Source: Anaeramoeba ignava BMAN (lineage: Eukaryota; Protista; Anaeramoebae). From it: DNA of 64,000 bases. A program made the position numbers and the translations under genes. Location: assembly GCA_028826165.1 (NCBI GenBank), contig JAPDFW010000106.1, positions 1 to 64,000 on the forward strand, read 5' to 3'. Below, one piece after another: positions 24,098 to 64,000 of this stretch (its first letter is position 1; each line of letters opens with the position of its first letter). Under the pieces are notes generated by a model, which was not told where the DNA came from, did not search any database, and worked only from the letters and a program-made list of their open reading frames with translations.

Positions 24098-26997
24098 TTA
24101 TTTTTCTAATCTCTCAAGTGTCCAATTTCCATTTTCTTGAATATCTTTATTATTTGGGAAATTATTCATTGCTTTAATTATTATTGATATTCCTTCTTTT
24201 TTTCTAATTTCAATTCGATTTTCTTTTTATTTATTTTTGATTTGGATTTTAAATTAATTAATTATTTAATTATTTAATTATTCAAAAAAAAGGTTTTTAA
24301 ATTGATAAAAATATTTTACCTTTATTTAAAGCAATATTACTTAAAGCCCAAATTCCATTTTCTTGAATATCTTGATTATTTGGGAAATTATTCATTGATT
24401 TAATTATTGTTGATATTCCATCTTTTTTTCTAATTTCAATTTTATTTTCTTTTTATTTTAATTTGGATTTTAAATTAATAAAATATTTAATTATTTAATT
24501 ATTCAAAAAAAATGTTTTTAAATTGATAAAAATATTTTACCATCATTTGCAGCAATATTACTTAAAGCCCAAATTCCATTTTTTTGAATATCTTGATTAT
24601 TTGGAAAATTATTCATTGATTTAATTATTATTGATATTCCATCTTTTTTTCTAATTTCAATTTTATTTTCTTTTTATTTATTTTTGATTTGGATTTTAAA
24701 TTAATAAATTATTTAATTAATTATTTCAAAAAAAAGGTTTTTAAATTGATAAAAATATTTTACTATCATTCACAGAAATATTAATAAAAGCTCGACAAGA
24801 ATAATTTTGGATATCTTCATTATTTGGGAAATTATTCATTGATTTAATTATTGTTGATATTCCATCTCGTATTCTAATTTCAATTTGATTTTCTTTTTAT
24901 TTATTTTTGATTTGGATTTTAAATTAATAAAATATTTATTTAATTAATTATTTAAAAAAAAAGGTTTTTAAATTGATAAAAATATTTTACCATTATTTGC
25001 AGAAATATTACTTAAAGCCCAAATTCCATATTTTTGAATATCTTGATTATTTGGAAAATTATTCATTGATTTAATTATTATTGATATTCCATCTTTTTTT
25101 CTAATTTCAATTTTATTTTCTTTTTATTTATTTTTGATTTGGATTTTAAATTAATAAATTATTTATTTAATTATTTCAAAAAAAGGTTTTTAAATTGATA
25201 AAAATATTTTACTATCACTATTTGCAGAAATATTAATAAAAGCTTGACAAGAATAATTTTGGATATCTTGATTATTTGGGAAATTATTCATTGATTTAAT
25301 TATTGTTGATATTCCATCTCGTATTCTAATTTCAATTTGATTTTCTTTTTATTTATTTTTGATTTAGATTTTAAATTAATAAATTATTTAATTATTTATT
25401 TCCAAAAAAAAGGTTTTTAAATTGATAAAATAGTTTTTACCATGATCTCCAACAGAAAAATTATGTAAAATAAAACATCCATTTTGTTGAATTTTTTCAT
25501 TTAATTGAAATTCTTTCATCCATTGAATTGTTTTTTCAATATTAATATCTTCTTCAACTTTAATTTCTTTTGTTTAGATTTAATTTTAATTTTAATTTTA
25601 TATTTAGATTTATATTTAGATTTAGATTTAGATTTAGGGAATAAATTACCATAAATTTTGCCTTCTTTTTGTTCTCGAAAATTTTGTAAATTAATTTGTA
25701 TTTTTCTTTCTTCTATTTCAGGTTTATTTTCTCTTTTTGTTAATTCAATTTTATTTTGATTTAAATCATTTTCTTTTTCTTCTAATTTTTGTTGTTTTTG
25801 ATTTATTTCATTTTCTTTTTTTTGTAATTTAGTTTTATTTTGATTTAAATCATTTTCTTTTTCTTCTAATTTTTGCTGTTTTTTATCCAATTTTTGTTGT
25901 TTTTGATCTAATTTTTGTTGTTTTTGGTTTAATTTGGTTTCTTTTTGTGTTAAATTTTCTGAAATTGATTTTAATTTTCCCATTTTTTCATCTAATAAAT
26001 CAACAAAAAAATTAGATGGAAATAATTGAAATAATTGTGTTTTTTCAATTTTTTGAATTTCTTCTTTTGTAATTTGTTTCTTTTCTTGAATTTTAATTAA
26101 AATTTCATAAATAGTTTTTTTAATTGAATTTGAATTTGAATTTGAATTTAATTCTGATTCTTCTTGAAAAGATTGATTAAAATTGAGTTTATTATTTTTC
26201 ATCCATTCAATAATTATTTCTTGAATTAAATTTGTTTGATCTCTTCCAAAATTTGAAATTAAAAAATCAATAATATTTAAGAATTCATTTGTTTTTAATT
26301 TTGAAATTTCTTTTTTCTGAAGAAGATTATTGTAATTTTTAAGAATAAAATTTTGACAAATTTCTAAAAGAAAATTTGAATGAATTTCTTTTGATTTTGA
26401 AAATATTTCAAATATATTATTTTGATTAATAATTGGTTCAATTTCTTTTTCAATTTTAATTTTTAATTTTTCTAATCTAATTATATCAGCAAATTTAAAA
26501 TATTTTTCGAATTCTTGATGATTAATATTGATTTCACCTTCATAAATATATTTGATTATTGGTTCAACAATTTCAAAATCGAATTCTTTAAAATAAATTT
26601 GATTTTCTCCTTTTTCTTTTGTAAATAAATCAAAAAATGAACTTCTTGCATTTAAAATGATTTTGTGGCATTTTATTGAGTTTTCTTTCTCATTTTCTTT
26701 CTCATTTTCTTTCTCATTTTCTTTCTTGTTTTCTTTTTCATTTTCTTTCTTCTTTTCTTTCTTATTTTCTTTCTTATTTTCTTTCTTATTTTCTTTTTCA
26801 TTTTCTTTCTTATTTTCTTTCTTATTTTCTTTACAATAAATTGTAAAATCTGTAAATTGTTTTTGAGTTTGATAAATTTTTGAAAAATTAAGTGATTGTT
26901 CTTTAAGTAAAATATTATCAATTTCTTTGATTGATAATTTGTATAATTCTTTTAAGTTTTCTGTGTTATTGTTATTGTTATTATTATTGTTATTCAT
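24098..26997 (-). CDS. BTB/POZ(-BACK)-coiled-coil-Armadillo protein, copy A: exon 1 26997-25650, cap exon 25566-25441, 5 internal ARM exons, terminal ARM exon
   Basis: BTB: FTDFTIYC..IKCHKIILNARSSFF..IIKYIYEG. Manually spliced exons give ARM repeats such as ENKIEIRKKDGISTIIKSMNNFPNNQDIQENGIWALSNIALNK. Ends WTLERLEK, stop 24098-24100. Confidence 0.9.
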
Positions 26998-27925: not shown

Positions 27926-30900
27926 TTATTTTTCTAATCTTTCAAGTGTCCAATTTCCTTTTTCTTGAATATCTTTATTATTTGGGAAATTATTCATTGC
28001 TTTTTTAATTAATTCATTTCCATTTAATCTTTTAATTTCAATTTGATTTTCTTTTTATTTATTTTTGATTTGGATTTTAAATTAATAAAATATTTAATTA
28101 TTTAATTATTCCCAAAAAAAAAGGTTTTTAAATTAATAAAAATATTTTACCATTATTTGCAGCAATATTACTTAAAGCCCAACATCCATTTTTTTGAATA
28201 TCTTGATTATTTGGGAAATTATTCATTGATTTAATTATTGTTGATATTCCATCTTTTTTTCTAATTTCAATTTTATTTTCTTTTTATTTTGATTTGATTT
28301 GGATTTTAAATTAATAAAATATTTAATTATTTAATTATTCCAAAAAAAAGGTTTTTAAATTAATAAAAATATTTTACTATCATTCACAGAAATATTAATA
28401 AAAGCTCGACAAGAATAATTTTGGATATCTTGATTATTTGGGAAATTATTCATTGATTTAATTATTGTTGAAATTCCTTTTTTTTTTCTAATTTCAATTT
28501 TATTTTCTTTTTATTTTGATTTGGATTTTAAATTAATAAATTATTTAATTATTTCAAAAAAAAGGTTTTTAAATTGATAAAAATATTTTACCATTATTCC
28601 CTATAGCAATATTACTTAAAGCCCAACATCCTTGTTTTTGAATATCTTGATTATTTGGGAAATTATTCATTGATTTAATTATTGTTGATATTCCATCTTT
28701 TTTTCTAATTTCAATTTTATTTTCTTTTTATTTATTTTTGATTTGGATTTTAAATTAATAAAATATTTAATTATTTAATTATTCCAAAAAAAAAGGTTTT
28801 TAAATTAATAAAAATATTTTACCATCATTTGCAGCAATATTTTTTAAAGCCCAACATCCATGTTTTTGAATATCTTGATTATTTGGGAAATTATTCATTG
28901 ATTTAATTATTGTTGAAATTCCATCTTTTTTTCCAATTTCAATTTGATTTTCTTTTTATTTTGATTTGGATTTTAAATTAATTAATTATTTAATTATTTA
29001 ATTATTCCAAAAAAAAGGTTTTTAAATTGATAAAAATATTTTACCATTATTAAAAGAAAGATTATTTAAAGCCCAACATCCATGTTTTTGAATATCTTGA
29101 TTATTTGGAAAATTATTCATTAATTTAATTATTATTGATATTCCATCTTTTTTTCCAATTTCAATTTGATTTTCTTTTTATTTATTTTGATTTGGATTTT
29201 AAATTAATAAATTATTTAATTAATTATTCCCAAAAAAAAAGTTTTTAAATTGATAAAAATATTTTACTATCATTCACAGAAATATTAATAAAAGCTCGAC
29301 AAGAATAATTTTGGATATCTTCATTATTTGGGAAATTATTCATTGATTTAATTATTGTTGATATTCCATCTCGTATTCTAATTTCAATTTGATTTTCTTT
29401 TTATTTATTTTTGATTTGGATTTTAAATTAATTAATTATTTAATTATTTATTTCCAAAAAAAAGGTTTTTAAATTGATAAAATAGTTTTTACCATGATCT
29501 CCAACAGAAAAATTATGTAAAATAAAACATCCATTTTGTTGAATTTTTTCATTTAATTGAAATTCTTTCATCCATTGAATTGTTTTTTCAATATTAATCT
29601 CTTCTTCAAATTTAATTCCTTTTGTTTAGATTTAATTTTAATTTTAATTTTATATTTAGATTTAGATTTAGATTTAGATTTATATTTAGATTTATATTTA
29701 GATTTAGATTTAGATTTAGGGAATAAATTACCAGAAATTTTGCCTTCTTTTTGTTCTCGAAAATTTTGTAAATTAATTTGTATTTTTCTTTCTTCTATTT
29801 CAGGTTTATTTTCTCTTTTTGTTAATTCAATTTTATTTTGATTTAAATCATTTTCTTTTTCTTTTAATTTTTGTTGTTTTTGATTTATTTCATTTTCTTT
29901 TTTTTGTAATTTAGTTTTATTTTGATTTAAATCATTTTCTTTTTCTTCTAATTTTTGTTGTTTTTGATTTAATTCATTTTCTTTTTGTAAATTTTCATTT
30001 TTCTTTTGATTTAATTTTTGTTGTTTTTGATTTAAATGATTTTCTTTTTCTTGTATTTTTTGTTCTCTTTTTTCTAGTTCAATTTTATTTTGATTTATTT
30101 CATTTTCTTTTTGTAGATTTTCATTTTCTTTTTCTTGTATTTTTTGTTCTCTTTTTTCTAGTTCAATTTTATTTTGATTTAAATGATTTTCTTTTTGTAG
30201 ATTTTCATTTTTCTTTTGATTTAATTTTTGTTGTTTTTGATTTATTTCATTTTCTTTTTTTTGTAATTTAGTTTTATTTTGATTTATTTGATTTTCTTTT
30301 TCTTCTAATTTTTGTTGTTTTTGATTTATTTCATTTTCTTTTTGTAAATTTTCATTTTCTTTTACTTTTAATTTTTGTTGTTTTTGATTTATTTCATTTT
30401 CTTTTTTTTGTAATTGAGTTTTATTTTTATTTAAATCATTTTCTTTTTCTTCTAATGTTTGTTGTTTTTGATTTAATTTTTGTTGTTTTTGATTTAATTT
30501 GGTTTCTTTTTGTGTTAAATTTTCTGAAATTGATTTTAATTTTCCCATTTTTTCATCTAATAAATCAACAAAAAAATTAGATGGAAATAATTGAAATAAT
30601 TGTGTTTTTTCAATTTTTTGAATTTCTTCTTTTGTAATTTGTTTCTTTTCTTGAATTTTAATTAAAATTTCATAAATAGTTTTTTTAATTGAATTTGATT
30701 TTAAATTTGAATTTAATTCTGATTCTTCTTGAAAAGATTGATTAAAATTGAGTTTATTATTTTTCATCCATTCAATAATGATTTCTTGAATTAAATTTGT
30801 TTGATCTCTTCCAAAATTTGAAATTAAAAAATCAATAATATTTAAGAATTCATTTGTTTTTAATTTTGAAATTTCTTTTTTTGAAGAAGATTATTGTAAT

Positions 30901-31564
30901 TTTTAAGAACAAAATTTTGACAAATTTCTAAAAAGAAAATTTGAATAATTTCTTTTGATTTTGAAAATATTTCAAATATATTATTTTGATTAATAATTGG
31001 TTCAATTTCTTTTTCAATTTTGATTTTTAATTTTTCTAATCTAATTATATCAGCAAATTTAAAATATTTTTCGAATTCTTGATGATTAATATTGATTTCA
31101 CCTTCATAAATATATTTGATTATTGGTTCAACAATTTCAAAATCGAATTCTTTAAAATAAATTTGATTTTCTCCTTTTTCTTTTGTAAATAAATCAAAAA
31201 ATGAACTTCTTGCATTTAAAATGATTTTGTGGCATTTTATTGAGTTTTCTTTCTCATTTTCTTTTTTATTTTCTTTCTTATTTTCTTTCTTGTTTTCTTT
31301 CTTATTTTCTTTCTTATTTTCTTTCTTATTTTCTTTCTTATTTTCTTTCTTATTTTCTTTCTTATTTTCTTTCTTATTTTCTTTCTTCTTTTCTTTACAA
31401 TAAATTGTAAAATCTGTAAATTGTTTTTGAGTTTGATAAATTTTTGAAAAATTAAGTGATTGTTCTTTAAGTAAAATATTATCAATTTCTTTGATTGATA
31501 ATTTGTATAATTCTTTTAAGTTTTCTGTGTTATTGTTATTGTTATTATTATTATTGTTATTCAT
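27926..31564 (-). CDS. BTB-coiled-coil-Armadillo protein, copy B: cap exon 29618-29493, 6 internal ARM exons, terminal exon; apparent frameshifts at ~30880-30950
   Basis: Near-identical to copy A. Three 1-nt indels relative to A, two of them in homopolymer runs. ARM exons end at about 29268, 29045, 28823, 28592, 28378 and 28151. Confidence 0.85.
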
Positions 31565-31632
31565 TTTGTATTTTTCTTTTTAAAAGAAAAATGAAAAAAG
31601 AAAATTAGAAAAAGGAAAATAAAAAGAAAAAA

Positions 31633-33481: not shown

Positions 33482-36302
33482 TTATTTTTCTAATCTCTTA
33501 AGTGTCCAATTTCCATTTTTTTGAATATCTTTATTATTTGGGAAATTATTCATTGCTTTTTTAGTTAATTCATTTCCATTTAATCTTTTAATTTCAATTT
33601 CATTTTCTTTTTATTTTTGATTTGAATTTTAAATTAATTAATTATTTATTTAATTATTTCAAAAAAAAGGTTTTTAAATTAATAAAAATATTTTACCTTT
33701 ATTATTAAAAGAAATATTTCTTAAAGCCCAAATTCCTTTATATTGAATATCTTGGTTATTTGGGAAATTATTCATTGATTTAATTATTGTTGATATTCCT
33801 TCTTTTTTTCTAATTTCAATTTTATTTTCTTTTTATTTATTTTTGATTTGGATTTTTAATTAATAAATTATTTATTTAATTAATTAAAAAAAAAGGTTTT
33901 TAAATTGATAAAATTATTTTACCATTATTCCCTATAGCAATATTACTTAAAGCCCAAATTCCATGTTTTTGAATATCTTGATTATTTGGGAAATTATTCA
34001 TTGATTTAATTATTGTTGAAATTCCATCTTTTTTTCCAATTTCAATTTGATTTTCTTTTTATTTATTTTTGATTTGGATTTTAAATTAATAAATTATTTA
34101 TTTATTTATTTATTTCAAAAAAAAGGTTTTTAAATTGATAAAATAGTTTTTACCATCACTATTTGCAGAAATATTAATAAAAGCTTGACAAGAATAGTTT
34201 TGAATATCTTGATTATTTGGGAAATTATTCATTGATTTAATTATTGTTGAAATTCCTTCTTTTTTTCTAATTTCAATTTCTTTTTATTTATTTTGATTTG
34301 GATTTTAAATCAATAAATTATTTAATTATTTAAAAAAAAAGGTTTTTAAATTGATAAAATAGTTTTTACCATGATCTCCAACAGAAAAATTATGTAAAAT
34401 AAAACATCCATTTTGTTGAATTTTTTCATTTAATTGAAATTCTTTCATCCATTGAATTGTTTTTTCAATATTAATCTCTTCTTCAACTTTAATTCCTTTT
34501 GTTTAGATTTAATTTTAATTTTAGATTTAATTTTAATTTTGATTTAGGAAATAAATTACCAGAAATTTTGCCTTCTTTTTGTTCTCGAAAATTTTGTAAA
34601 TTAATTTGTATTTTTCTTTCTTCTTTGATTCTAACTTTGTTTTCTCTTTTTGCTAATTCAATTTTACTTTGATTTAAATCATTTTCTTTTTGTAAATTTT
34701 CATTTTTCTTTTGATTTAATTTTTGTTTTTTTTGATTTAAATCATTTTCTTTTTCTTGTATTTTTTGTTCTCTTTTTTGTAATTGAGTTTTATTTTGATT
34801 TAAATCATTTTCTTTTTTTTGTAATTGAGTTTTATTTTGATTTACTTGATTTTCTTTTTCTTCTAATTTTTGTTGTTTTTTATTTAATTTTTGTTGTTTT
34901 TTATCTAATTTTTGTTGTTTTTGATTTATTTCATTTTGATTTTCTTCTAATTTTTGTTGTTTTTGATTCAAATGATTTTCTTTTTGTAAATTTTCATTTT
35001 CTTTTTCATTTACTTTTTGTTGTTTTTGATTTATTTCATTTTCTTTTTTTTGTAATTGAGTTTTATTTTGATTTAAATCATTTTCTTTTTCTTCTAATTT
35101 TTGTTGTTTTTGATTCAAATGATTTTCTTTTTCTTGTATTTTTTGTTCTCTTTTTTCTAGTTGAGTTTTATTTTGATTTAAATCATGTTCTCTTTTTTGT
35201 AATTGAGTTTTATTTTGATTTACTTGATTTTCTTTTTCTTCCAATGTTTGTTGTTTTTGATTTAATTTTTGTTGTTTTTGATTTAATTTGGTTTCTTTTT
35301 GTGTTAAATTTTCTGAAATTGATTTTAATTTTCCCATTTTTTCATCTAATAAATCAACAAAAAAATTAGATGGAAATAATTGAAATAATTGTGTTTTTTC
35401 AATTTTTTGAATTTCTTCTTTTGTCATTTGTTTCTTTTCTTGAATTTTAATTAAAATTTCATAAATAGTTTTTTTAATTGAATTTGAATTTGATTTTAAA
35501 TTTGAATTTAATTCTAATTCTTCTTGAAAAGATTGATTAAAATTGATTTTATTATTTTTCATCCATTCAATAATTATTTCTTGAATTAAATTTGTTTGAT
35601 CTCTTCCAAAATTTGAAATTAAAAAATCAATAATATTTAAGAATTCATTTGTTTTTAATTTTGAAATTTCTTTTTTTTGAAGAAGATTATTGTAATTTTT
35701 AAGAATAAAATTTTGACAAATTTCTAAAAGAAAATTTGAATGAATTTCTTTTGATTTTGAAAATATTTCAAATATATTATTTTGATTAATAATTGGTTCA
35801 ATTTCTTTTTCAATTTTGATTTTTAATTTTTCTAATCTAATTATATCAGCAAATTTAAAATATTTTTCGAATTCTTGATGATTAATATTGATTTCACCTT
35901 CATAAATATATTTGATTATTGGTTCAACAATTTCAAAATCGAATTCTTTAAAATAAATTTGATTTTCTCCTTTTTCTTTTGTAAATAAATCAAAAAATGA
36001 ACTTCTTGCATTTAAAATGATTTTGTGGCATTTTATTGAGTTTTCTTTCTTGTTTTCTTTCTTATTTTCTTTCTTATTTTCTTTCTCATTTTCTTTCTTA
36101 TTTTCTTTCTTATTTTTCTTTTCTTCTTTTCTTTACAATAAATTGTAAAATCTGTAAATTGTTTTTGAGTTTGATAAATTTTTGAAAAATTAAGTGATTG
36201 TTCTTTAAGTAAAATATTATCAATTTCTTTGATTGATAATTTGTATAATTCTTTTAAGTTTTCTGTGTTATTGTTATTGTTATTATTATTATTATTATTC
36301 AT
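33482..36302 (-). CDS. BTB-coiled-coil-Armadillo protein, copy C: cap exon 34495-34370, 3 internal ARM exons, terminal exon; apparent 1-nt frameshift at ~36115
   Basis: Near-identical to copies A and B. Extra T in a homopolymer of the KKEN repeat. ARM exons end at about 34154, 33923 and 33697. Stop 33482-33484. Confidence 0.85.
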
Positions 36303-41860: not shown

Positions 41861-44145
41861 TGAATCTCTCTAATTTTTAAACGTTAAATTGATTTTTTTT
41901 CAAATCATTTTTTCACATCTTTTATTTTTCAAAATCTTTTACAAAGAAAAAATAAAGAATTTTTGTTGAAGGAAATAATTGAATTTTGTATTGGATTCAG
42001 TTAAAATTAATATATTTCAAAATGAAAAAAGAAAAAATTTGAAAAATTGATCAAAACAATTATCTTTTGAATTCTCATAAATTTCTTATTCATATCATTA
42101 ATTGAATTTTTCTCATCAATTTCTTTCTCAATAATCAAGTTCAGTTGTATGAAACAGAATAGAAAAAAGAACCAAAATGAAGAAATATTCAACAAAATTT
42201 TCCAAAAGATAAAAATTTGTTTGAAAAGTTTTGGATTATGAAATTATGGAGATTGTCCCAAATAAAAAAAAAGTAGTATTTCTTTTTCTTTTTCCAAATA
42301 GAAAAAATTGATATTTTTTTAATCTATTCTTTAATTATTTTTTTTAATAAAAAGGGGAAAAATCAAATTTTTTATTTTTTTTTATTTTTTTTTCAAAGTG
42401 ACAGCTGTCACTTCAAAAGGGGAAAAAATGACAAAATATTTTTGCTTGCGGGGAAGGCTTTAAATTTATTGAAAGAATTTATTCAAAAAAAAATTTCAAA
42501 TTCAATTAATTATTCAAATTTTTTCCAATTTTTATTCCAAAATCGAAATTTAAATTCAAATGAAATTGAAATAAAATGTTTTGGATTCATAAATCAAAAT
42601 TTTTCCCAAATTCAAAATAATGAGAATTTATTCAATTTAACTAAAGAAGAAATTATCAAATTTATTCAATTTAAACAAGAAAAAAAAGAAATTTTTCAAT
42701 TTGATTTTTTTCAATTTTTAAATAATTGGATTGAAAAAAGAAATAAAAGATTAAAATTAAAGAAATATGAACACAAAATGAATGCAAAGAAAAGATTATT
42801 TCATTCTTTTTTTTCATTATTTGATAAAGATTCAATTTCAAAACAAGATTTTGATAAATTAAAACAATTTGATTTTTTTCCCAAATCTTTTTTAGTTAAT
42901 ATTCAAAACAAAGTTATTCAAGATAATCAAAAGGAAATTGAAGATAAAGAGAAGGAAATTGAAGAGAAATGGAAGAAAGAAGTTGAGAATAAAAACAAGG
43001 AAAATCAACAAATGAAAATTGAAATTGAAGAGAAATGGAAAAAAGAAGTTGAAGAACTTAAATCCAAATTTGAATTAATGGAATTACAAAAGATTTTTTC
43101 AGATTCAGAAATTATTCAAGATATTGAATATGTTAAGAAATTACAAGAATGGATAAATGATAATGATTTTTTTTCTAAAATGAAAAAAGGATTTTCAGCA
43201 AAAAGAGTTGGATTTGATTGTAAAAAATGGCATAAAGCAGTTGATGGGAAAGGAAAAACATTAGTTATTATCAAAACAAAACAAAATTTTATTTTTGGAG
43301 GTTTTACTCAAGTTGGATTTAAATATTCAAATGGAGAATGGATTAATGATTCAAATGCATTTATTTTTTCATTAAGAAATGATAAAGGGGATAGAATACC
43401 TGCAAAGTTTACAATTAAAAAAGGTCAAGAAGGAAATGCAATTTATTCTAATTTAAGTTATGGTCCAAATTTTGGAAATGGTAGTGGAAATGGACATGAT
43501 TTTTATTTAACTTCTAATTTACAACCTGGTAATTCAAATATTGGTGGTAGTTATAATCTACCTAATGGAATTACTTATAATACAGATGAAGCTAAAAGTT
43601 ATTTAGCTGGTTCTTATAATTCATGGGTTGTTGATGAACTTGAAACTTATTTCATTTAAAAATTAATTAATAATAAGAAAATCAAACTTTTTTTTATTTT
43701 TTTTTTCAAAATTTAATTCAATTTTAATTTACTTTTAATCAAATTAATTTCTTTAAAATAAAAAATAAGAAACGAATTTAATTTTAAATAATTTAATTTT
43801 AATTTAAAATATTTATTAAAAATTTAATTAATAAAAAATAATCCAAAAAAAAATAATAAATTTTAAAAATTGAATAATTTTAATATAATAAATAAAAATA
43901 AAAATTGAAAATAGAAATTAATAATAATTAAATTTAAATTCATTAATTAAAATATTAAAATAAAAATCAAATAAAATTTATTATTAAATAATATTTAAAT
44001 ATTAGTAAATTATAATCAAAATCAAAAATAGAATAATTAGTAAATTATTTTTAGAAAGTTTATCTTATTCAATCATGTTAAATTCAATTTATTTAAAAAT
44101 TTTTAATTTTTAATTTTATTTTTAATATATTTTATTATAATTAAA

Positions 44146-51278: not shown

Positions 51279-51944
51279 TTATAAATTAATTTTTTGTTTT
51301 TGTTTTTGATAAAATAAAATTAATTTTTTCTATTTTTTTTTTGTTTTTTTTTTTAATTTAAAAAGGAGAAAATCTTCTTTTTTTTCTTCTTTTTTTTTTT
51401 AAATTAAAAAAAATTAAAAAATTAAAAAAATCTTTATTATTTTAATTATTTTTCAATTATTATAAAGTTTTAATTTAATCTAAATTATTATAATCTTTTT
51501 TAATATTTTATTTTGAATTGATTTATCAATTTCAAATATATTTAAATAATTTAATAAAAATCTTTTTTGTTAATTAAAATATTTCTAAGATTAATTTTTT
51601 CTTTTTTTCTCTTTTAAAAAGAATTGAAATAAATAATGGATATTAAAAATGGTTATCTATACTTTATGGGTTTGAGAAATAATTTTTATTCTAATTAAAT
51701 TTCTTTTTATTGATTAAATATTTGTGATTGTTTATTTTGTAATTTTTGGATCATGAAAACATAAAATTGGAAATATTTTATTTTAATCATTATATTAAAA
51801 TTTTTTTTCTTTTTTAAAAGATAATACTTGATTTAATTTGTTTTTCAATTAAATTTTGACATGAACAAAAATGAAAAAAAATGAAAAAATGAAATTTAAA
51901 AAAATTGGAAAGTAAAAAAATCCAAATTTGATATCCAAAATTCT

Positions 51945-52460
51945 AATTTATAAATTAATTTAAAAATATAATTTCTAAAATAATTTTATGTTTAAATAAT
52001 AATTTATTGTTTTAGATTTAAATATTTTCTTATTTAAATATTTAACATATAAATATAAAAAATGAAAATAGATTTAATTTGATATTTAATTTATAAATTA
52101 ATTTAAAATATAATTTAACATTTAATTTTATGTTTAAAATAATAATTTAATGTTTTAAATTTAAATATTTTCTTATTTAAATATTTAACATATAATTATA
52201 AAAAATAAGAATAAGTTTAATTTAATATTTAATTTATAAATTAATTTAAAAATATAATTTAATATTTAATTTTATTATTAAAATAATAATTTATTGTTTT
52301 AGATTTAAATATTTTATTATCTAAATATTTAACATATAAATATAAAAAATAAGAATAGATTTAATTTAATATTTAATTTATAAATTAATTTAGAAATATA
52401 ATTTAATATTCAATTTTATTATTAAAATAATAATTTAATGTTTTAGATTTAAATATAAAA
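51945..52460. repeat. ~141-bp satellite array 5 (~3.5 units)
   Basis: Same unit as array 1. Confidence 0.85.
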
Positions 52461-52674: not shown

Positions 52675-55401
52675 TTAAATATCCAAATTATCTTGAAGTT
52701 CTTGTTCTTCTTCGTTTTCTTTGATAATTTCTTTGATAATTTGTTTTCTTCTTTTTTTCTTATATAAAATAATTCCAAGAATAATTATTGAAATAATAAC
52801 AATAATTGGAATAATTATACCTAAACTTATTACTGTTATTTTTGAATTATCATTAGGTTCATTTGTTGATGATATTGTAATTGAAGTTGTTGAATTAATT
52901 CCTGAATATTGATTAACTAAACAATTTAAATCAGCTGATGAATAAACTGAAATTTCATAATATTCTCCTCCTTTTAATCCTGAAGAAACTGAATAATTTG
53001 TTGTTAAATTTGTTAAGCAAATTGAAGTTGAATTATAAGTAAATGAATATGCTTTTAATCCACTTGATAAAATTAATGAATCCCAATTACATTCAAATCC
53101 ATTAATTATTGAATAACAATTTAATGAAGTAATATTTCCTAATTTAGCTCTTGTTGAAATAATTGAACTAGGTAATCCTAAATATGGCGTTTCACAATTT
53201 AAATCTGAACATCCTCTAATTGAAATATTATATTCAATATTTCCTGATATTCCACTTATTATTCCAATTACTTCATTTCCACTTAAATCAAGAGATGTGA
53301 ATTTTTCCCAATTTGTTTTATTATCAAGTGAAATTGAATAATTATTTGCATTTATTAATTTTGTGAAATTAAATTCAATTTCTTCAATTTTGGAAATTGT
53401 TTCATAAATTATTGGAGATGGTAAATTATCAGTTTTAATTGAAATTGATGAAATATATCCACATTTTCCATTTGAATTACATGCTGATATATTGATTTGA
53501 TATTGTTGATTTGGGAATTGAACTGTAAATTGTTGATTTGATGAAGTTGGTTGATAATTTCCTGAATCATTTTGAGAAATTGATTGATAAGTAAAATTAT
53601 AATAAAATGGAATTGAACAATTAATTGGTTGATTCCAATTACAATTAATATCGATTGAATTTGAAATTGAACATGTTAAATTTGTAATTTCTCCAAATAT
53701 TAATGAAATTGATGATTCAACAATTTCTCCTTTATCATCTCCTTCACACTCATGTGTTCTACATCCACAAATTGAAATATTATAATCATTTTCACATTCA
53801 AAATCATTCCAAAAATAATCAAGTGAAGAATTATCAACTGAAATGAAAGATATTAAATCAGGTTCAGATTGAATGAAATAAGAAATATTATAATGATCAA
53901 GATGTGCAATTCCTTCATTGATCTGGACATTTGGATAATCCCAAGTAATATTAATTGAATTATTTGAAGGATTTGATAATTGGAAATCTTTTACAGAATC
54001 AATTTTTGTTGTTAAATTAACAAAAGAAGAAGATTCACCACATTTCATTGATTCATTATCACAAGCATGAATTTGAATTGAATAATATTCATTTCCAGTA
54101 ATATTATCATAAATTGAAGAATTAAATTGTTGATAATAAGCATTCTCATCTTCAAGAATTGGAGAATCAATATCAATCCAATCATATCCATAATTAATTT
54201 GATAAATCAGAGTTGAAGGAAATTCAATTTTATCCCAATAACAATCAAATGATGAAAACAATGATGAACAATTAACAATATTAACTTGAGGAATGAAACT
54301 ACCTTCATAAACAAATGTTTGATTTCCAACAGAAGCTCCAATAACAGTAAAATTTCCATAAATTGAAACAAATTCTGCGAATTGTGAAGCTGAAGGTTGA
54401 TTGAAAATTTGTTCTTGATTCCAAATTGATCCATTATATCTGTAAATAAATGCTTTTTTTGTCTGAGTTCCAATAACAATAACATCTTCATAAATTGAAA
54501 CAGAAGATCCAAAAGTTGTAGCTGATTCATTCAAAATTTGTTCTTCATTCCAAATTGTTCCATTATATCTGTAAATAAATGTTTGATTTGCCTGAGTTCC
54601 AATAACAATAACATCTTCATAAATTGAAACAGACCATCCAAAATCTGTAGCTGATTCATTCAAAACTTGTTCTTGATTCCAAATTGATCCATTATATCTG
54701 TAAATAAATGTTTTTCTTGAATTAGGAGCTCCAATAACAATAACATCTTCATAAATTGAAACAGAAGATCCAAAATTTATAGCTAATTCACTCAAAATTT
54801 GTTCTTCATTCCAAATTGTTCCATTATATCTGTAAATAAATGCTTTATTTCTACTAAAACTAGTTCCAATAACCATAACATCTTCATAAATTGAGGAATG
54901 CCATCCAAACATTGAAGCTGAAGGTTCACTCAAAATTTGTTCTTCATTCCAAATTGTTCCATTATATCTGTAAATAAATGCTTGACTTGAACCATAAGCT
55001 CCAATAACAATAACATCTTTATAAACTGAAGCACTCCATCCAAGCATTGAAGCTGAAGGTTTACTCAAAATTTGTTCAAGTTCAAAATTTGTTCCATTAT
55101 ATCTGTAAATAAATGCTTTTCTTTCAATAGGAGCTCCAATAACAAGAACATCTTTATAAATTGAAACACTTGTTCCAAAACTTCCTGAACCTGAAAATTG
55201 ATCTAATAAATTCCAAATCCAAGCTTCATCTGGAGTAGAATAATATCTTGTTGTTTCTGTTAATAATCTTGTTGTTTCTAATTCTTGAATTATTGTGGAA
55301 ATTGATTTTTGTTGATTTTGATTTTGATTTTGATTTGATTGAATTAAGAAAATATTGATAATTAAGAAAAAGGAAAAGGAAAAGAAAAGATTTAATTTCA
55401 T
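52675..55401 (-). CDS. Type I membrane protein: signal peptide, 7 FG-GAP-like propeller blades, ~5 FN3-like domains, TM helix, short cytosolic tail
   Basis: Seven repeats FG.SVSIY.DV.VIG[AT]...FIYRYNG..W..EQ. FN3 signatures (SINITWDYP..YNISY; YQINISACN). Hydrophobic segment ITVISLGIIIPIIVIISIIILGIILY followed by KKKRRK. Confidence 0.88.
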   Translation of the reverse strand: MKLNLFFSFSFFLIINIFLIQSNQNQNQNQQKSISTIIQELETTRLLTETTRYYSTPDEAWIWNLLDQFSGSGSFGTSVSIYKDVLVIGAPIERKAFIYRYNGTNFELEQILSKPSASMLGWSASVYKDVIVIGAYGSSQAFIYRYNGTIWNEEQILSEPSASMFGWHSSIYEDVMVIGTSFSRNKAFIYRYNGTIWNEEQILSELAINFGSSVSIYEDVIVIGAPNSRKTFIYRYNGSIWNQEQVLNESATDFGWSVSIYEDVIVIGTQANQTFIYRYNGTIWNEEQILNESATTFGSSVSIYEDVIVIGTQTKKAFIYRYNGSIWNQEQIFNQPSASQFAEFVSIYGNFTVIGASVGNQTFVYEGSFIPQVNIVNCSSLFSSFDCYWDKIEFPSTLIYQINYGYDWIDIDSPILEDENAYYQQFNSSIYDNITGNEYYSIQIHACDNESMKCGESSSFVNLTTKIDSVKDFQLSNPSNNSINITWDYPNVQINEGIAHLDHYNISYFIQSEPDLISFISVDNSSLDYFWNDFECENDYNISICGCRTHECEGDDKGEIVESSISLIFGEITNLTCSISNSIDINCNWNQPINCSIPFYYNFTYQSISQNDSGNYQPTSSNQQFTVQFPNQQYQINISACNSNGKCGYISSISIKTDNLPSPIIYETISKIEEIEFNFTKLINANNYSISLDNKTNWEKFTSLDLSGNEVIGIISGISGNIEYNISIRGCSDLNCETPYLGLPSSIISTRAKLGNITSLNCYSIINGFECNWDSLILSSGLKAYSFTYNSTSICLTNLTTNYSVSSGLKGGEYYEISVYSSADLNCLVNQYSGINSTTSITISSTNEPNDNSKITVISLGIIIPIIVIISIIILGIILYKKKRRKQIIKEIIKENEEEQELQDNLDI

Positions 55402-55934
55402 TTTTGTTTCTTTTTTGTTTTGTTAACTATTTTATTTTAAAAATAAATAAATAAGAAATTAATAGAAAATGAGTTTATTTTTGTGTGTTTATTAGGTAAA
55501 AAAATTATTTTTTTTCTTACTTTTTTGTTCTTGTTTTTGTTTGAAAGAAAAAAAGAATAAGAAAAGAAAAAATGATTAATTTTTTTTTAATTAAATAAAA
55601 TTGAGAAAAAAAAATGATTATTTTGTTTATTCTTTTAATTAAAAAATTGAATAAATGAATTTAAAATTAAAATTAAATTATATTTTAGGAATAATTTTTT
55701 ATTATTAATTAATGATAATTTCTATTTAAATTAATGAATAAATTTTAATTTAAATTTTCCAAAAAAAAGAAAAAGAAATTTAATAAGAATTTAATAAGAA
55801 TTTAATAAGAAAAAGAAAAAGAATTTTATTTCTAATTATTAATTAAATCTAAATTAAATCTTAATTAAATCTAAATTAAATCTAAATAAAATCTAAATTA
55901 AAAATTTGATTCAAATTTATTTCTTTTTCTTTTT

Positions 55935-57508
55935 AAAAATATAAAAAAATAAGAATAAGTTTAATTTAATATTTAATTTATAAATTAATCTAAAAATATA
56001 ATTTAATATTTAATTTTATTATTAAAATAATAATTTAATGTTTTAAATTTAAATATTTTATTATTTAAATATTTAACATATAAATATAAAAATGAGAATA
56101 GATTTAATTTAATATTTAATTTATAAATTAATTAAAAATATAATTTAATAATCAATTTTATTATTAAAATATTAATTTATTATTTTAGATTTAAATATTT
56201 TCTTATTTAAATATTTAACATATAAATATAAAAAAATAGGAATAGTTTTAATTTAATATTTAATTTATAAATTAATTAAAAATATAATTTAATATTTAAT
56301 TTTATGTTTAAAATAATAATTTAATGTTTTAGATTTAAATATTTTATTATTTAAATATTTAACATATAAATATAAAAATGAGAATAGATTTGATTTAATA
56401 TTTAATTTATAAATTAATTTAGAAATATAATTTCTAAAATAATTTTATTATTAAAATAATAATTTATTGTTTTAAATTTAAATATTTTATTATTTAAGAA
56501 TTTAACATATAAATATAAAAAATAAGAATAGATTTAATTTAATATTTAATTTATAAATTATTTTAAAAATATAATTTAATAATCAATTTTATGTTTAAAA
56601 TAATAATTTAATGTTTTAGATTTAAATATTTTCTTATTTAAATATTTAACATATAAATATAAAAAATGAGAATAGATTTAATTTAATATTTAATTTATAA
56701 ATTAATTTAAAAATATAATTTAATATTTAATTTTATGTTTAAAATAATAATTTAATGTTTTAGATTTAAATATTTTATTATTTAAATATTTAACATATAA
56801 ATATAGAAAATAAAAATAAGTTTAATTTAATATTTAATTAATAAAATAATTTAAAAATATAATTTAATAATTAATTTTATTATTAAAATAATAATTTAAT
56901 GTTTTAGATTTAAATATTTTATTATTTAAATATTTAACATATAAATATAAAAATGGGAATAGATTTGATTTAATATTTAATTTATAAATTAATTTAAAAA
57001 TATAATTTCTAAAAATAATTTTATGTTTAAAATAATAATTTATTGTTTTAGATTTAAATATTTTATTATTTAAATATTTAACATATAAATATAAAAATGA
57101 GAATAAATTTAATTTAATATTTAATTTATAAAATAATTTAAAAATATAATTTAATATTTAATTTTATTATTAAAATAATAATTTAATGTTTTAAATTTAA
57201 ATATTTTATTATTTAAATATTTAACATAAAAATATAAAAAATGAAAATAGATTTAATTTAATATTTAATTTATAAATTAATTTAAAAATATAATTTAATA
57301 TTTAATTTTATGTTTAAAATAATAATTTAATGTTTTAGATTTAAATATTTTATTATTTAAATATTTACCAAATAAATATAAAAAATGAGAATAGATTTAA
57401 TTTAATATTTAATTTATAAATTAATTTAAAAATATAATTTAATATTTAATTTTATTATTAAAATATTAATTTAATGTTTTAGATTTAAATATTTTATTAT
57501 TTAAAAAT
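55935..57508. repeat. ~141-bp satellite array 6 (~11 units)
   Basis: Same unit as array 1. Confidence 0.9.
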
Positions 57509-57679
57509 ATGATGTTTTTTGAATTTGTGTTTTGAGTTAGTTTTGTTGATTTTTTATTCTAAAATTCTTTTAAAAATTCTTTCTCAAAATTGAATAAAAA
57601 ATTTAATTAGTTTGTTATTGTGGTTTTCATTTTTTCTTTTTTAAAAAATAGAATTAAAAAGAAATCCTTTTTTTTTTGC

Positions 57680-60600
57680 TTATTTTTCTAATCTCTTAAG
57701 TGTCCAATTTCCTTTTTCTTGAATATCTTTATTATTTGGGAAATTATTCATTGCTTTAATTATTGTTGATATTCCTTCTTTTTTTCTAATTTCAATTTTA
57801 TTTTCTTTTTATTTATTTTTTGATTTGGATTTTAAATTAATAAATTATTTAATTATTTCCAAAAAAAAAGGTTTTTTAAATTGATAAAAATATTTTACCT
57901 TCATTTAAAGCAATATTTCTTAAAGCCCAAATCCCATATTTTTGAATATCTTGATTATTTGGGAAATTATTCATTGATTTAATTATTATTATTGATATTC
58001 CTTCTTTTTTTCTAATTTTAATTTGATTTTCTTTTTATTTATTTTTTGATTTGAATTTTAAATTATTAAATTATTTATTTATTCCCAAAAAAAAAAGGTT
58101 TTTAAATTGATAAAAATATTTTACCTTTATTTAAAGCAATATTTCTTAAAGCCCAAATTGCATGTTTTTGAATATCTTGATTATTTGGGAAATTATTCAT
58201 TGATTTAATTATTATTGATATTCCTTCTTTTTTTCCAATTTCAATTTGATTTTCTTTTTATTTATTTTTTGATTTGAATTTTAAATTATTAAATTATTTA
58301 TTTAATTATTTCCAAAAAAAAAGGTTTTTAAATTGATAAAAATATTTTACCTTCATTTAAAGCAATATTTCTTAAAGCCCAAATCCCATGTTTTTGAATA
58401 TCTTGATTATTTGGGAAATTATTCATTGATTTAATTATTATTGATATTCCATCTTTTTTTCTAATTTCAATTTGATTTTCTTTTTATTTATTTTTTGATT
58501 TGGATTTTAAATTATTAAATTATTTATTTAATTATTTCCAAAAAAAAGGTTTTTAAATTGATAAAATTAATATTTAATTATTTTGATTTAAATTTGAAAT
58601 TAAATTTAAAAAAATGTTTTTTTATTATTATTTCTTATTTTCAATTTTTAAATAAATTTAATAAAAAAAAGTGGATTGATTTTAAAAATTAAAGAGAAGA
58701 ATAATAATTGATTTAGTTTTTAGTTTTTAAATTGATAAAAATATTTTACCTTTATTAAAAGAAATATTTTTTAAAGTCCAAATTCCATTTTCTTGAATAT
58801 CTTGATTATTTGGGAAATTATTCATTGATTTAATTATTATTGATATTCCATCTTTTTTTCCAATTTCAATTTGATTTTCTTTTTATTTATTTTGATTTGA
58901 ATTTTAAATTATTAAATTATTTATTTATTCCCAAAAAAAAAGGTTTTTAAATTGATAAAAATATTTTACCTTTATTAAAAGAAATATTTTTTAAAGTCCA
59001 AATCCCATATTTTTGAATATCTTGATTATTTGGGAAATTATTCATTGATTTAATTATTATTGATATTCCATCTTTTTTTCCAATTTCAATTTGATTTTCT
59101 TTTTATTTATTTTTTGATTTGAATTTTAAATTATTAAATTATTTATTTATTCCCAAAAAAAAAGGTTTTTAAATTGATAAAAATATTTTACCTTTATTAA
59201 AAGAAATATTTTTTAAAGCCCAACATCCTTGTTTTTGAATATCTTGATTATTTGGGAAATTATTCATTGATTTAATTATTGTTGAAATTCCTTCTTTTTT
59301 TCTAATTTCAATTCGATTTTCTTTTTATTTATTTTTGATTTGAATTTTAAATTAATAAATTATTTATTTATTTCCAAAAAAAAAGGTTTTTAAATTGATA
59401 AAAATATTTTACCTTCATTTAAAGCAATATTTCTTAAAGTCCAAATTCCATTTTCTTGAATATCTTGATTATTTGGGAAATTATTCATTGATTTAATTAT
59501 TATTGATATTCCATCTTTTTTTCTAATTTCAATTCGATTTTCTTTTTATTTATTTTTGATTTGAATTTTAAATTAATAAATTATTTATTTAATTATTTCC
59601 CAAAAAAAAAGTTTTTAAATTGATAAAAATATTTTACCTTCATTATTAAAAGAAAGATTAATAAAAGTTTGACAAGAATAGTTTTGAATATCTTGATTAT
59701 TTGGGAAATTATTCATTGATTTAATTATTATTGATATTCCTTCTTTTTTTCCAATTTCAATTTTATTTTCTTTTTATTTATTTTGATTTGGATTTTAAAT
59801 TATTAAATTATTTATTTAATTATTTCCAAAAAAAAGGTTTTTAAATTGATAAAAATATTTTACCTTCATTTAAAGAAATATTTTTTAAAGTCCAAATTCC
59901 ATTTTCTTGAATATCTTGATTATTTGGGAAATTATTCATTGATTTAATTATTGTTGAAATTCCATCTTTTTTTCTAATTTCAATTTTATTTTCTTTTTAT
60001 TTATTTTTTGATTTGGATTTTAAATTATTAAATTATTTATTTCCAAAAAAAAGGTTTTTAAATTGATAAAATTAATATTTAATTATTTTGATTTAAATTT
60101 GAAATTAAATTTAAAAAAATGTTTTTTTATTATTATTTCTTATTTTCAATTTTTAAATAAATTTAATAAAAAAAAGTGGATTGATTTTAAAAATTAAAGA
60201 GAAGAATAATAATTGATTTAGTTTTTAGTTTTTAAATTGATAAAAATATTTTACCTTTATTAAAAGAAATATTTTTTAAAGTCCAAATTCCATTTTCTTG
60301 AATATCTTGATTATTTGGGAAATTATTCATTGATTTAATTATTGTTGATATTCCTTCTTTTTTTCTAATTTCAATTCGATTTTCTTTTTATTTATTTTTT
60401 GATTTGAATTTTAAATTAATAAATTATTTATTTATTTCCAAAAAAAAAGGTTTTTAAATTGATAAAAATATTTTACCTTTATTTAAAGAAATATTATTTA
60501 AAGCCCAACATCCATTTTCTTGAATATCTTGATTATTTGGGAAATTATTCATTGCTTTAATTATTGTTGAAATTCCTTCTTTTTTTCTAATTTCAATTTG

Positions 60601-63600
60601 ATTTTCTTTTTATTTATTTTTTGATTTGAATTTTAAATTATTAAATTATTTATTTATTTCCAAAAAAAAAGGTTTTTAAATTGATAAAAATATTTTACCT
60701 TTATTAAAAGAAATATTTTTTAAAGTCCAAATTCCATATTTTTGGATATCTTGATTATTTGGGAAATTATTCATTGATTTAATTATTATTGAAATTCCAT
60801 CTTTTTTTCTAATTTCAATTCGATTTTCTTTTTATTTATTTTTTGATTTGAATTTTAAATTAATAAATTATTTATTTATTTCAAAAAAAAAGGTTTTTAA
60901 ATTGATAAAAATATTTTACTATCATTTAAAGCAATATTATTTAAAGTCCAAATTCCATTTTCTTGAATATCTTGATTATTTGGGAAATTATTCATTGATT
61001 TAATTATTATTGATATTCCTTCTTTTTTTCCAATTTCAATTTGATTTTCTTTTTATTTATTTTGATTTGAATTTTAAATTAATAAATTATTTATTTATTC
61101 CCAAAAAAAAGGTTTTTAAATTGATAAAAATATTTTACCTTTATTAAAAGAAATATTTTTTAAAGCCCAAATTCCTTTTTCTTGAATATCTTGATTATTT
61201 GGGAAATTATTCATTGATTTAATTATTGTTGAAATTCCTTCTTTTTTTCTAATTTCAATTCGATTTTCTTTTTATTTATTTTGATTTGGATTTTAAATAA
61301 ATTAATTATTCCAAAAAAAGGTTTTTAAATTGATAAAATTATTTTACCTTCATTTTCAGCAATATTACTTAAAGCCCAAATTCCATGTTTTTGAATATCT
61401 TGATTATTTGGGAAATTATTCATTGATTTAATTATTGTTGATATTCCATCTTTTTTTCTAATTTCAATTCGATTTTCTTTTTATTTATTTTTGATTTGGA
61501 TTTTAAATTATTTAATTATTTAATTATTTATTCCCAAAAAAAAGGTTTTTAAATTGATAAAAATATTTTACCTTCATTTTCAGCAATATTACTTAAAGCC
61601 CAAATTCCATGTTTTTGAATATCTTGATTATTTGGGAAATTATTCATTGATTTAATTATTGTTGAAATTCCATCTTTTTTTCCAATTTCAATTTTATTTT
61701 CTTTTTATTTATTTTTGATTTGGATTTTAAATTAATTAATTATTTAATTATTTCCAAAAAGGTTTTAAATTGATAAAAATATTTTACCATTATTTAAAGC
61801 AATATTACTTAAAGCCCAAATTGCATTTTTTTGAATATCTTGATTATTTGGGAAATTATTCATTGATTTAATTATTGTTGAAATTCCATCTTTTTTTCCA
61901 ATTTCAATTTGATTTTCTTTTTTATTTATTTTTGATTTGGATTTTAAATTAATAAATTAATTATTTATTTATTTATTCCCAAAAAAAGGTTTTTAAATTG
62001 ATAAAATAGTTTTTACCATCATCTCCAACAGAAAAATTATGTAAAATAAAACATCCATTTTGTTGAATTTTTTCATTTAATTGAAATTCTTTCATCCATT
62101 GAATTGTTTTTTCAATATTAATATCTTCTTCAACTTTAATTTCTTTTTTTAAATTTAATTTTAATATTAATTATAATTTTAATTTAGGAAATAAATTACC
62201 AGAAATTTTTCCTTCTTTTTGTTCTCGAAAATTTTGTAAATTAATTTGGATTTTTCTTTCTTCTTTTATTCTAACTTTGTTTTCTCTTTTTGCTAATTTA
62301 ATTTTATTTTGATTTAAATCATTTTCTTTTTGTAAATTTTCATTTTTCTTTTGATTTAATTTTTGTTTTTTTTGATTTAAATGATTTTCTTTTTCTTGTA
62401 TTTTTTGTTCTCTTTTTTCTAATTGAGTTTTATTTTGATTTAAATCATTTTCTTTTTCTTTCAATTTTTGTTGTTTTTGATTTAAATGATTTTCTTTTTC
62501 TTGTATTTTTTGTTCTCTTTTTTCTAATTGAGTTTTATTTTGATTCATTTGATTTTCTTTTTGTAAATTTTCATTTTTCTTTTGATTTAATTTTTGTTTT
62601 TTTTGATTTAAATGATTTTCTTTTTCTTGTATTTTTTGTTCTCTTTTTTCTAATTGAGTTTTATTTTGATTTAAATCATTTTCTTTTTCTTCTAATTTTT
62701 GTTGTTTTTGATTCAAACCATTTTCTTTTTGTAAATTTTCATTTTCTTTTACTTTTACTTTTTGTTGCTTTTGATTTATTTCATTTTCTTTTTTTTGTAA
62801 TTGAGTTTTATTTTGATTTAAATCATTTTCTTTTTCTTCTAATGTTTGTTGTTTTTGATTTAATTTTTGTTGTTTTTTTAAATTTTCATTTTCTTTTTCA
62901 TTTACTTTTTGTTGCTTTTGATTTATTTCATTTTCTTTTTTTTCTAATTGAGTTTTATTTTGATTTAAATCATTTTCTTTTTCTTCTAATTTTTGTTGTT
63001 TTTGATTTAAATCATTTTCTTTTTGTAAATTTTCATTTTCTTTTTCATTTACTTTTTGTTGTTTTTGATTTATTTCATTTTCTTTTTCTTCTAATTTTTG
63101 TTGTTTTTGATTTAATTCAATTTTATTTTGATTTAGATCATTTTCTTTTTCTTTTAATTTTTGTTGTTTTTGATTTAAATCATTTTCTTTTTGTAAATTT
63201 TCATTTTCATTTTCTTTTACTTTTTGTTGTTTTTGATTTATTTCATTTTCTTTTTTTTGTAATTGATTTTTATTTTGATTTAAATCATTTTCTTTTTCTT
63301 CTAATGTTTGTTGTTTTTTATCCAATTTTTGTTGTTTTTGATTTAATTTTTGTTGTTTTTGGTTTAATTTGGTTTCTTTTTGTGTTAAATTTTCTGAAAT
63401 TGATTTTAATTTTCCCATTTTTTCATCTAATAAATCAACAAAAAAATTAGATGGAAATAATTGAAATAATTGTGTTTTTTCAATTTTTTGAATTTCTTCT
63501 TTTGTAATTTGTTTCTTTTCTTGAATTTTAATTAAAATTTCATAAATAGTTTTTTTAATTGAATTTGAATTTGATTTTAAATTTGAATTTAAATTTGATT

Positions 63601-64000
63601 CTTCTTGAAAAGATTGATTAAAATTAAGTTTATTATTTTTCATCCATTCAATAATTATTTCTTGAATTAAATTTGTTTGATCTCTTCCAAAATTTGAAAT
63701 TAAAAAATCAATAATATTTAAGAATTCATTTGTTTTTAATTTTGAAATTTCTTTTTTTTGAAGAAGATTATTGTAATTTTTAAGAATAAAATTTTGACAA
63801 ATTTCTAAAAGAAAATTTGAATGAATTTCTTTTGATTTTGAAAATATTTCAAATATATTATTTTGATTAATAATTGGTTCAATTTCTTTTTCAATTTTAA
63901 TTTTTAATTTTTCTAATCTAATTATATCAGCAAATTTAAAATATTTTTCGAATTCTTGATGATTAATATTGATTTCACCTTCATAAATATATTTGATTAT
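57680..64000 (-). CDS. BTB-coiled-coil-Armadillo protein, copy D (5' end beyond the right edge): exon 1 to 62200, cap exon 62142-62017, 17 internal ARM exons, terminal exon
   Basis: Same BTB/BACK sequence as copies A-C. ARM exons end at about 61788, 61572, 61348, 61139, 60920, 60699, 60477, 60255, 59864, 59638, 59413, 59192, 58970, 58750, 58351, 58125 and 57899. Stop 57680-57682. Confidence 0.9.
58567..58722. mobile_element. 156-bp intronic insertion flanked by the 18-bp direct repeat GTTTTTAAATTGATAAAA (copy 1)
   Basis: Absent from sibling introns; direct repeats at 58549-58566 and 58723-58740. Confidence 0.6.
60072..60227. mobile_element. Second copy of the same 156-bp intronic insertion with the same 18-bp direct repeat
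   Basis: Direct repeats at 60054-60071 and 60228-60245; the sequence appears identical to copy 1 by eye. Confidence 0.6.

Follow-up and report, generated by a model that had tools for sequence, protein, structure and literature searches.

Background

Tandem exons of fixed length, each carrying one repeat of a protein and all bounded by introns of a single phase, have been described in Tetrahymena, a unicellular bacterivore, where 90-bp exons encode leucine-rich repeats (LRRs): repeat number varies among paralogs, the genes form clonal expansions, unequal crossing-over was proposed and a role in recognition was suggested (Xiong et al. 2019, PMC6564038). In brown algae, ROCO-LRR and NB-ARC-TPR genes also place one repeat on each symmetric exon; their paralogs are near-identical outside the repeat domain, the concave binding face is variable and under selection, and intra- and intergenic recombination as well as alternative splicing have been reported (Zambounis et al. 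2012, PMC3341825; Teng et al. 2024, PMC11378527). Here, an array of this architecture, composed of armadillo (ARM) repeats, is described from a stretch of 64,000 nucleotides of the Anaeramoeba ignava BMAN genome (assembly GCA_028826165.1, contig JAPDFW010000106.1, positions 1 to 64,000), hereafter the window, whose contig is labelled C107. The array belongs to a gene, called copy D, with a BTB-BACK head.

Compared with the Tetrahymena genes, those of A. ignava encode ARM repeats and not LRRs, have introns of phase 1 and not 2, and number tens rather than thousands; the ciliate genes are reported to be associated with REP retrotransposons and to be mostly under purifying selection, and no E3-adaptor head is described for them (PMC6564038). 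The brown-algal repeats are attached to GTPase or NB-ARC switches, whereas the A. ignava head is BTB-BACK or RING, and the inverted or intronic spare exons and the alternative splicing reported there were not seen in the A. ignava arrays (PMC3341825, PMC11378527). The one-repeat-exon architecture is known already; in the literature found, no description was met of exon arrays of ARM repeats, on E3-ligase adaptors or heads, or in this lineage.

By analogy, the A. ignava arrays would work like exon-shuffled receptor arrays and their head like that of the fast-evolving cullin adaptors, among which the MATH-BTB proteins are counted. In the F-box adaptors of nematodes and plants, a conserved cullin-binding head is joined to a fast-evolving substrate part, in families shaped by birth and death, and those of nematodes have been proposed to sense or degrade foreign proteins (Thomas 2006, as cited in PMC8665587). 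The fast-evolving adaptors are not known to carry binding domains in the form of repeat arrays with exon modularity. Designed armadillo proteins (dArmRP) share with copy D an N-cap, near-identical internal modules, a C-cap, the register of helix 3 and variation at peptide positions, but are made of engineered modules of 42 amino acids (aa), against natural ones of 43 or 44 aa in A. ignava (PMC4756613, PMC11228518).

Structure of the copy D gene

Copy D is a BTB-BACK-coiled-coil-ARM gene of 1,550 aa, with a coding sequence of 4,653 nt, located on the minus strand; its open reading frame (ORF) is complete from the ATG through the stop. Exon 1, which starts past the window end, is followed by an N-cap exon, 17 internal ARM exons (cassettes) and a C-cap exon, as reported in Table 1. 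The gene was profiled exon by exon. Fifteen cassettes measure 129 nt and two 132 nt, and none of the 17 contains a stop codon. All the 18 introns between N-cap and C-cap are GT..AG and of phase 1; as GT is found at 0.6% of positions across this stretch, 18 donors in register are not due to chance. If left unspliced, each intron meets a stop within 7-14 codons, and read-through of intron 1 leads to a stop at 62171. The GC content is 20% in exons versus 10% in introns. Every ARM repeat occupies one symmetric exon of phase 1, set in a near-identical unit of exon plus intron, and the units are spliced. A Pfam match of exon 1 to RNase_Y_N was dismissed as a compositional match to the coiled coil.

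The first-pass annotation, made on the letters alone, had described an array at 57680-62142, built of an intron of ~93 nt plus an exon of 129 nt, with one ARM repeat per exon, all introns in phase 1 and 17 stop-free cassettes between the two caps. Exon coordinates and translation bear out the single repeat per exon, the phase and the cassette count. The exon length also stands, while the intron length is departed from by two long introns of 262 and 270 nt and by the N-cap intron of 100 nt. The range is correct for the array and too short for the gene, to which intron 1 and exon 1 also belong.

Splicing of the array

Four sequencing runs were compared with positions 57600-62400, using assembled contigs as evidence. 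Two of them, coming from two studies (X3 and X5), were read as RNA from the CT..AC joints themselves, the other two (X1 and X2) as DNA. Contigs of both X3 and X5 cross intron 1 exactly, and CT..AC joints were also found at the donors listed in Table 1. Over the same interval no splice joint was found in X1 and X2; the joints in these runs are scattered, have short sides and are not of splice type, as mis-placement in repeats would produce. The spliced gene model, proposed beforehand, is supported by these contigs, which cross the predicted sites in the RNA runs and not in the DNA runs. The contigs across intron 1 are mosaics, carrying paralog-type letters. The family is young and has expanded in A. 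ignava, and copy D is one of its expressed genes; the X3 and X5 contigs confirm the splice sites of copy D and are silent on rare skipped isoforms.

Five joints of X3 and X5 reach distant acceptors and resemble, at first sight, the product of exon skipping. Cassettes can share as many as 28 nt at their 5' ends, and in four of these cases the matched side, 23-28 nt long, agrees in full with the canonical neighbour; the fifth joint is best accounted for by the junction that is canonical in paralog A or B. Skipping was rejected for all of them, and no unambiguous cassette-skipping junction was found in the X3 and X5 contigs, which drop rare variants.

Other signs of programmed choice among cassettes were also looked for. 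Eight introns fold no better than their shuffles (z between -0.8 and +1.1), and neither strong inverted repeats nor Dscam-like docking-selector pairing between introns were found. Inverted cassettes were not detected: across 20 sources or loci, no cassette match departs from the coding strand. Past the C-cap, only single partial cassettes occur, in loci L008 and L018.

A transcript-derived protein of EukProt (P0048) maps to C74:232252-234203 and C24:230376-230916 (loci L033 and L039), with a mid-repeat switch from one BTB-ARM gene to the ARM exons of another; it shows the C24 exons joined in genomic order. As evidence of recombination it was rejected, because the switch falls within an identical stretch of 24 nt, corresponding to the overlap of an assembler at k=25, and the protein is probably an assembly chimera.

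Repeat fold and BTB-BACK head

Single cassettes of copy D were compared with Pfam: Arm gave the best result (E 5.7e-5 for cassette 1, above the cut-off), and ARM_LRRK2 and ZER1 matched weakly. ARM repeats are three-helix units of about 42 aa which together build a superhelix. A profile of the cassettes finds its matches in designed ARM proteins, importin-alpha and LRRK2, and helix 3 is in register with that of designed ARM. The alignment-based fold of a public relative, KAJ5069043.1 (P0151), is a regular ARM solenoid with three helices per repeat (pLDDT 96.7), for which Foldseek reported designed ARM proteins and beta-catenin as closest; it replaced a single-sequence fold of the ARM region of another protein, P0001, with a pLDDT of 43. 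An Asn at position 37, in helix 3, is found in 16/16 typical copy D cassettes and in 183/224 family-wide; we take this residue to hold the peptide backbone, as in other ARM proteins.

The head of copy A, 95% identical to that of copy D, has its best matches in the PDB with KBTBD2/4, KLHL3/11 and SPOP, extending through both BTB and BACK of KBTBD2 and KLHL11; the Pfam BACK domain was found on the relative P0015. These results agree with the proposal, already present in the first-pass annotation, of ARM cassettes behind a BTB-BACK head akin to Cullin-3 (Cul3) adaptors, in which BTB precedes the 3-box/BACK helices and the substrate domain is C-terminal. A Cul3 orthologue is present in the genome, a cullin on C58 matching Cullin-3 with an E of 4e-127, versus 2e-107 for Cul4. 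Eight cullin C-termini were counted in all. Two pairs of them, C57:233883 with C57:239953 and C64:575051 with C109:175314, share identical last residues, one copy (L025) being frameshifted; such pairs are either recent duplications or assembly redundancy.

Variation of the cassettes

Variation was evaluated on 224 typical cassettes, with groove positions picked from knowledge of ARM proteins after the sequences had been inspected. The highest entropy is found at helix-3 positions 29, 30, 33, 36 and 40, with 2.4-3.3 bits (1.2-1.8 within arrays), the other positions being mostly below 0.6 bits within arrays; position 2 also toggles. The buried positions 27, 28, 31, 34 and 35, together with Asn37, are conserved between these hypervariable neighbours, with helical periodicity. 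Overall, 182 distinct groove signatures are found, and 216 cassette sequences out of 224 are unique. An early designed ARM library was reportedly randomised at positions 4, 29, 30, 33, 36, 40 and 41, of which position 4 corresponds to cassette position 2. Positions 29, 30, 33, 36 and 40 align in register with helix 3 of designed ARM proteins, where the peptide site is made up of Glu30 and Trp33 (PMC4756613).

With a fixed tree, groove codons reach a tree length of 99, compared with 17 for framework codons and 15 for those of the outer surface, the groove evolving ~6-fold faster than the framework. Omega is ~1-1.5 at groove codons versus ~0.6 at the framework, and for the framework alone it differs significantly from 1. 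Variation concentrates on what is the peptide groove of ARM proteins, and the framework is conserved.

The family in the genome

Genome-wide counts cover the A. ignava BMAN assembly, 42,843,398 bases in 147 contigs. The cassette-core pattern was found 615 times, versus 0 for the control, and at least 38 loci are related to the N-cap exon. Six of these are near-identical: copies A to D in the window, one at C107:161 kb and one on C89. Across 23 arrays, 246 of 263 cassettes (94%) are in frame, stop-free and in a common register. Of nine other arrays tested, eight are preceded by a BTB domain; for the ninth (L013), the match belongs to an adjoining BTB-BACK-TLDc gene. Cassette number ranges between 3 and 25 among paralogs, and the six with heads ~92-96% identical differ in both cassette number (3-17) and order. 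Frameshifts or stops affect 6/14 cassettes of L006 (C55:160-163.6 kb) and 5/22 of L008 (C60:1077-1084 kb), which may be either pseudogenes or assembly errors.

Table 1. Features of copy D, its paralogs and the satellite beside it. Positions refer to the window unless a contig is named.
Feature	Position	Strand	Evidence
Copy D exon 1: BTB, BACK-like helices, long Q/K/E/N coiled coil	62200..64000, start C107:64402	-	Pfam BTB E 1.9e-12
Copy D intron 1, 57 nt, GT-AG, phase 1	62143..62199	-	exactly spanned by X3 and X5 contigs
Copy D N-cap ARM exon, 126 nt	62017..62142	-	donor 62017 used in X3 and X5
Copy D array: 17 one-repeat ARM exons, phase-1 introns of 80-97 nt, two longer	57899..61916	-	donors 61788, 61572, 59192 in X3/X5 only
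Copy D long intron 8, 262 nt, insert of ~170 nt	59993..60254	-	sequence identity with intron 14 insert
Copy D long intron 14, 270 nt, second copy of the insert	58480..58749	-	sequence identity with intron 8 insert
Copy D C-cap ARM exon, ends TAA	57680..57804	-	exon/ORF reading
Paralog A, head 95% identical to copy D in nucleotides, 5 internal cassettes	24098..26997	-	sequence comparison
Paralog B, 6 internal cassettes, exon 1 frameshift near 30860 in the assembly (homopolymer context)	27926..31564	-
Paralog C, 3 internal cassettes, exon 1 frameshift in a low-complexity tract of the assembly	33482..36302	-
AT-rich satellite of ~144 bp, downstream of copy D; also upstream of D, flanking A, B, C and several other arrays	55934..57508	.

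In the close paralog of C89 (L005:1-3427, C89:8000-11426), the BTB lies at C89:6511-6927, separated by ~5 kb from the remainder of exon 1, and the gap holds two long ORFs of 866 and 295 aa without Pfam match; it is possibly an inserted mobile element. The ~144-bp satellite is found in the window at 22870-23927, 27087-27754, 31631-33310, 36391-36570 and 51926-52456, in addition to the tract of Table 1, and also beside arrays L002, L005, L006, L011, L017, L019 and L020; flanking the arrays in this way, it could promote whole-gene duplication. Two further regions of the window were noted. At 37024-43659, on the plus strand, a BTB ORF (37024-37521) and a TLDc ORF (42442-43659) are ~5 kb apart, with ORFs without Pfam match in between. 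At 52675-55401, on the minus strand, a 908-aa ORF combines FG-GAP repeats and Fn3 with what is probably a membrane segment at its C-terminus, as in an integrin-like surface protein.

Origin of array diversity

Identity between introns is ~0.65-0.95 within an array or subfamily versus mostly ~0.3-0.75 between subfamilies, which indicates concerted evolution of the exon plus intron unit. Helix 1 is subfamily-specific, while for helix 3 the variation inside an array almost equals that from one subfamily to another; a single helix-3 segment is shared by four arrays of two subfamilies. In copy D, 91 of 136 informative site pairs are incompatible by the four-gamete test. Homogenised introns and mosaic cassettes fit germline unequal crossing-over and conversion.

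The inserts of introns 8 and 14 are 100% identical over 159 nt, without other close copies in the genome, and lie within an exact tract of 307 nt, at an offset of 1,505 nt, bounded by 4 and 9 exon differences. The tract may stem either from a block that was duplicated recently and then overwritten by local exchange, or from conversion over a short stretch. The insert was also considered as a dispersed element and rejected as such, since besides the two exact copies only AT-rich matches of 70-79% were found. The earlier suggestion, that symmetric phase-1 cassettes are diversified by recombination, is sustained by the range of cassette numbers between paralogs, the mosaics and the 307-nt tract.

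Public relatives

In GenBank, the young cassette type is found behind RING-kinase-SH3 heads (KAJ5075045.1 and KAJ5069043.1), while older, divergent relatives within A. ignava have ARM-RCC1-BTB or BTB-ARM order and are labelled 'protein aardvark', an automatic name given to KAJ5072951.1, KAJ5071211.1, KAJ5075045.1 and KAJ5069043.1. These entries share with copy D the presence of BTB and ARM in one chain and an ARM_LRRK2/ZER1-like repeat subtype; the literature found says nothing of modular exons or a hypervariable groove in them. Plant ARIA/ABAP1 and animal ARMC5 are BTB-ARM proteins too, conserved and low-copy, and have ARM before BTB, unlike copy D. RING-kinase(-SH3) proteins with the same or a related ARM array (P0001, P0151 and P0054, the latter with a repeat period of 39 aa) provide a second E3-type head. 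In P0005 and P0012, from other eukaryotes or metagenome, related ARM arrays are fused to ADP-ribosyltransferase-like and MLKL-like domains.

The young BTB-array genes did not come up in public protein sets, although records of the same genome may lie outside the sets searched. With the same limit, which makes for weak evidence of absence, the D-type BTB head had no match in protein sets, nor did eight read-through exon-1 products in an exact look-up. No protein of A. flamelloides was named among 36 matches, in a search covering lengths 0.55-1.75 times the query. The genes had been called hidden: this is largely true of the young BTB-ARM arrays and not of their older relatives, which are in GenBank. 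Repeat masking before gene prediction would explain the missing genes. According to the genome paper, the introns number 32,108 and are short and AT-rich; armadillo repeats go unmentioned in its main text and in the supplements examined (PMC11550330).

Discussion

We consider it probable, on the whole, that the A. ignava genome encodes a repertoire of peptide-binding ARM arrays carried by Cul3 adaptors, and that its variety comes from unequal crossing-over and conversion among the symmetric units. Homogeneous units would in all likelihood feed unequal crossing-over and short-tract gene conversion; in-frame changes of repeat number and reshuffled groove residues would then, very probably, lead over evolutionary time to a repertoire of binders of extended peptides. 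The BTB-BACK head would plausibly dock Cullin-3, each gene being a putative substrate receptor of a Cullin-3 RING ligase (CRL3), which would send solenoid-bound proteins to ubiquitination, and the RING-kinase versions might ubiquitinate without a cullin. The targets could, with about even likelihood, be foreign, fast-changing proteins of prey bacteria, symbionts, viruses or mobile elements.

Several points weigh against this interpretation. The hydrophobic-x-Glu loop which binds Cul3 is only partly conserved: the Glu aligns, with a gap of three residues making the loop shorter than in KBTBD2. The read evidence consists of contigs assembled from paralogs 95% alike and not of full-length transcripts, and frameshifts are present in the assembly of B, C and arrays L006 and L008. 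Omega at the groove is not significantly above 1 (log-likelihood gain below 1 unit), and recombination violates the tree model behind the estimates. Four-gamete incompatibility shows no decay over distance (permutation p 0.18-0.31), so that recurrent mutation could contribute to it. Cul3 binding and foreign targets are both predictions.

BTB adaptors and ARM proteins act mostly on host substrates, and the genes could accordingly be CRL3 adaptors or scaffolds for the organism's own proteins, involved for example in membrane traffic or in maintaining symbiosomes; the turnover of repeats would then be a mere consequence of the tandem structure. The older, divergent 'aardvark' BTB-ARM genes of the same genome would suit such a role, as would an omega not formally above 1. 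Stable host substrates would, however, conserve the groove, which instead evolves fastest, next to a conserved outer face (tree length 99 versus 15), and the family shows a birth-and-death pattern with broken copies; we therefore regard endogenous regulation as unlikely.

The first-pass annotation had gone as far as a programmable system comparable to TALE, VLR or Dscam, in which many isoforms per gene would be produced by cassette skipping, or arrays would be rearranged within a clone. Symmetric cassettes with near-identical splice sites would keep any skip in frame, brown-algal LRR exon arrays are alternatively spliced (PMC11378527), and five long-range CT..AC joints are present in X3 and X5. 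As all five are explicable by canonical junctions, the joints of the DNA runs are scattered, short-sided and not splice joints, and no intron structure above chance, strong inverted repeats or inverted cassettes were found, this claim is not supported by the contigs, which drop rare variants, and the system is improbable. VLRs rely on an incomplete germline gene with flanking donor cassettes, whereas copy D is a complete gene, and on the features tested the arrays do not appear to be members of the Dscam, VLR or TALE classes. In its fullest form, the proposal would be of a natural programmable peptide reader, with a helix-3 code per ARM module, modules reassembled by skipping or within-clone recombination and Cul3 ubiquitination aimed at new foreign proteins; such adaptive-like intracellular immunity in a metamonad appears more doubtful still.

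An AT-rich, repeat-prone genome with many satellites, in which the framework omega is only ~0.6 and some arrays are degenerate, might also host a mostly neutral, minisatellite-like expansion of the exon-intron unit, with helix 3 under relaxed constraint. We judge this very unlikely, since 94% of the cassettes remain in frame and stop-free though introns change freely in length, buried helix-3 positions are conserved between hypervariable ones with helical periodicity, framework omega is significantly below 1 and the genes are spliced. That array length and mosaic order derive from a mis-assembled repeat is hardly credible, because, although homopolymer frameshifts suggest residual long-read errors and no contig among those listed spans the array, nearly all cassettes are distinct (216/224 unique), introns are array-specific and D-type junction sequences occur in spliced contigs.

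If the repertoire of genome-encoded binders is real, a deep-branching, bacteria-eating and symbiont-hosting eukaryote would have independently built an exon-modular, groove-variable ARM repertoire wired to ubiquitin ligases, in a gene family that public protein sets seem for the most part to lack. A third repeat type and a third lineage would join the ciliate and brown-algal receptor arrays built by exon shuffling, with degradation as the plausible output, and the ~180 distinct groove variants of the 224 cassettes would be a natural counterpart of designed ARM libraries. The targeting of foreign proteins by cullin adaptors would become testable with near-identical natural modules.

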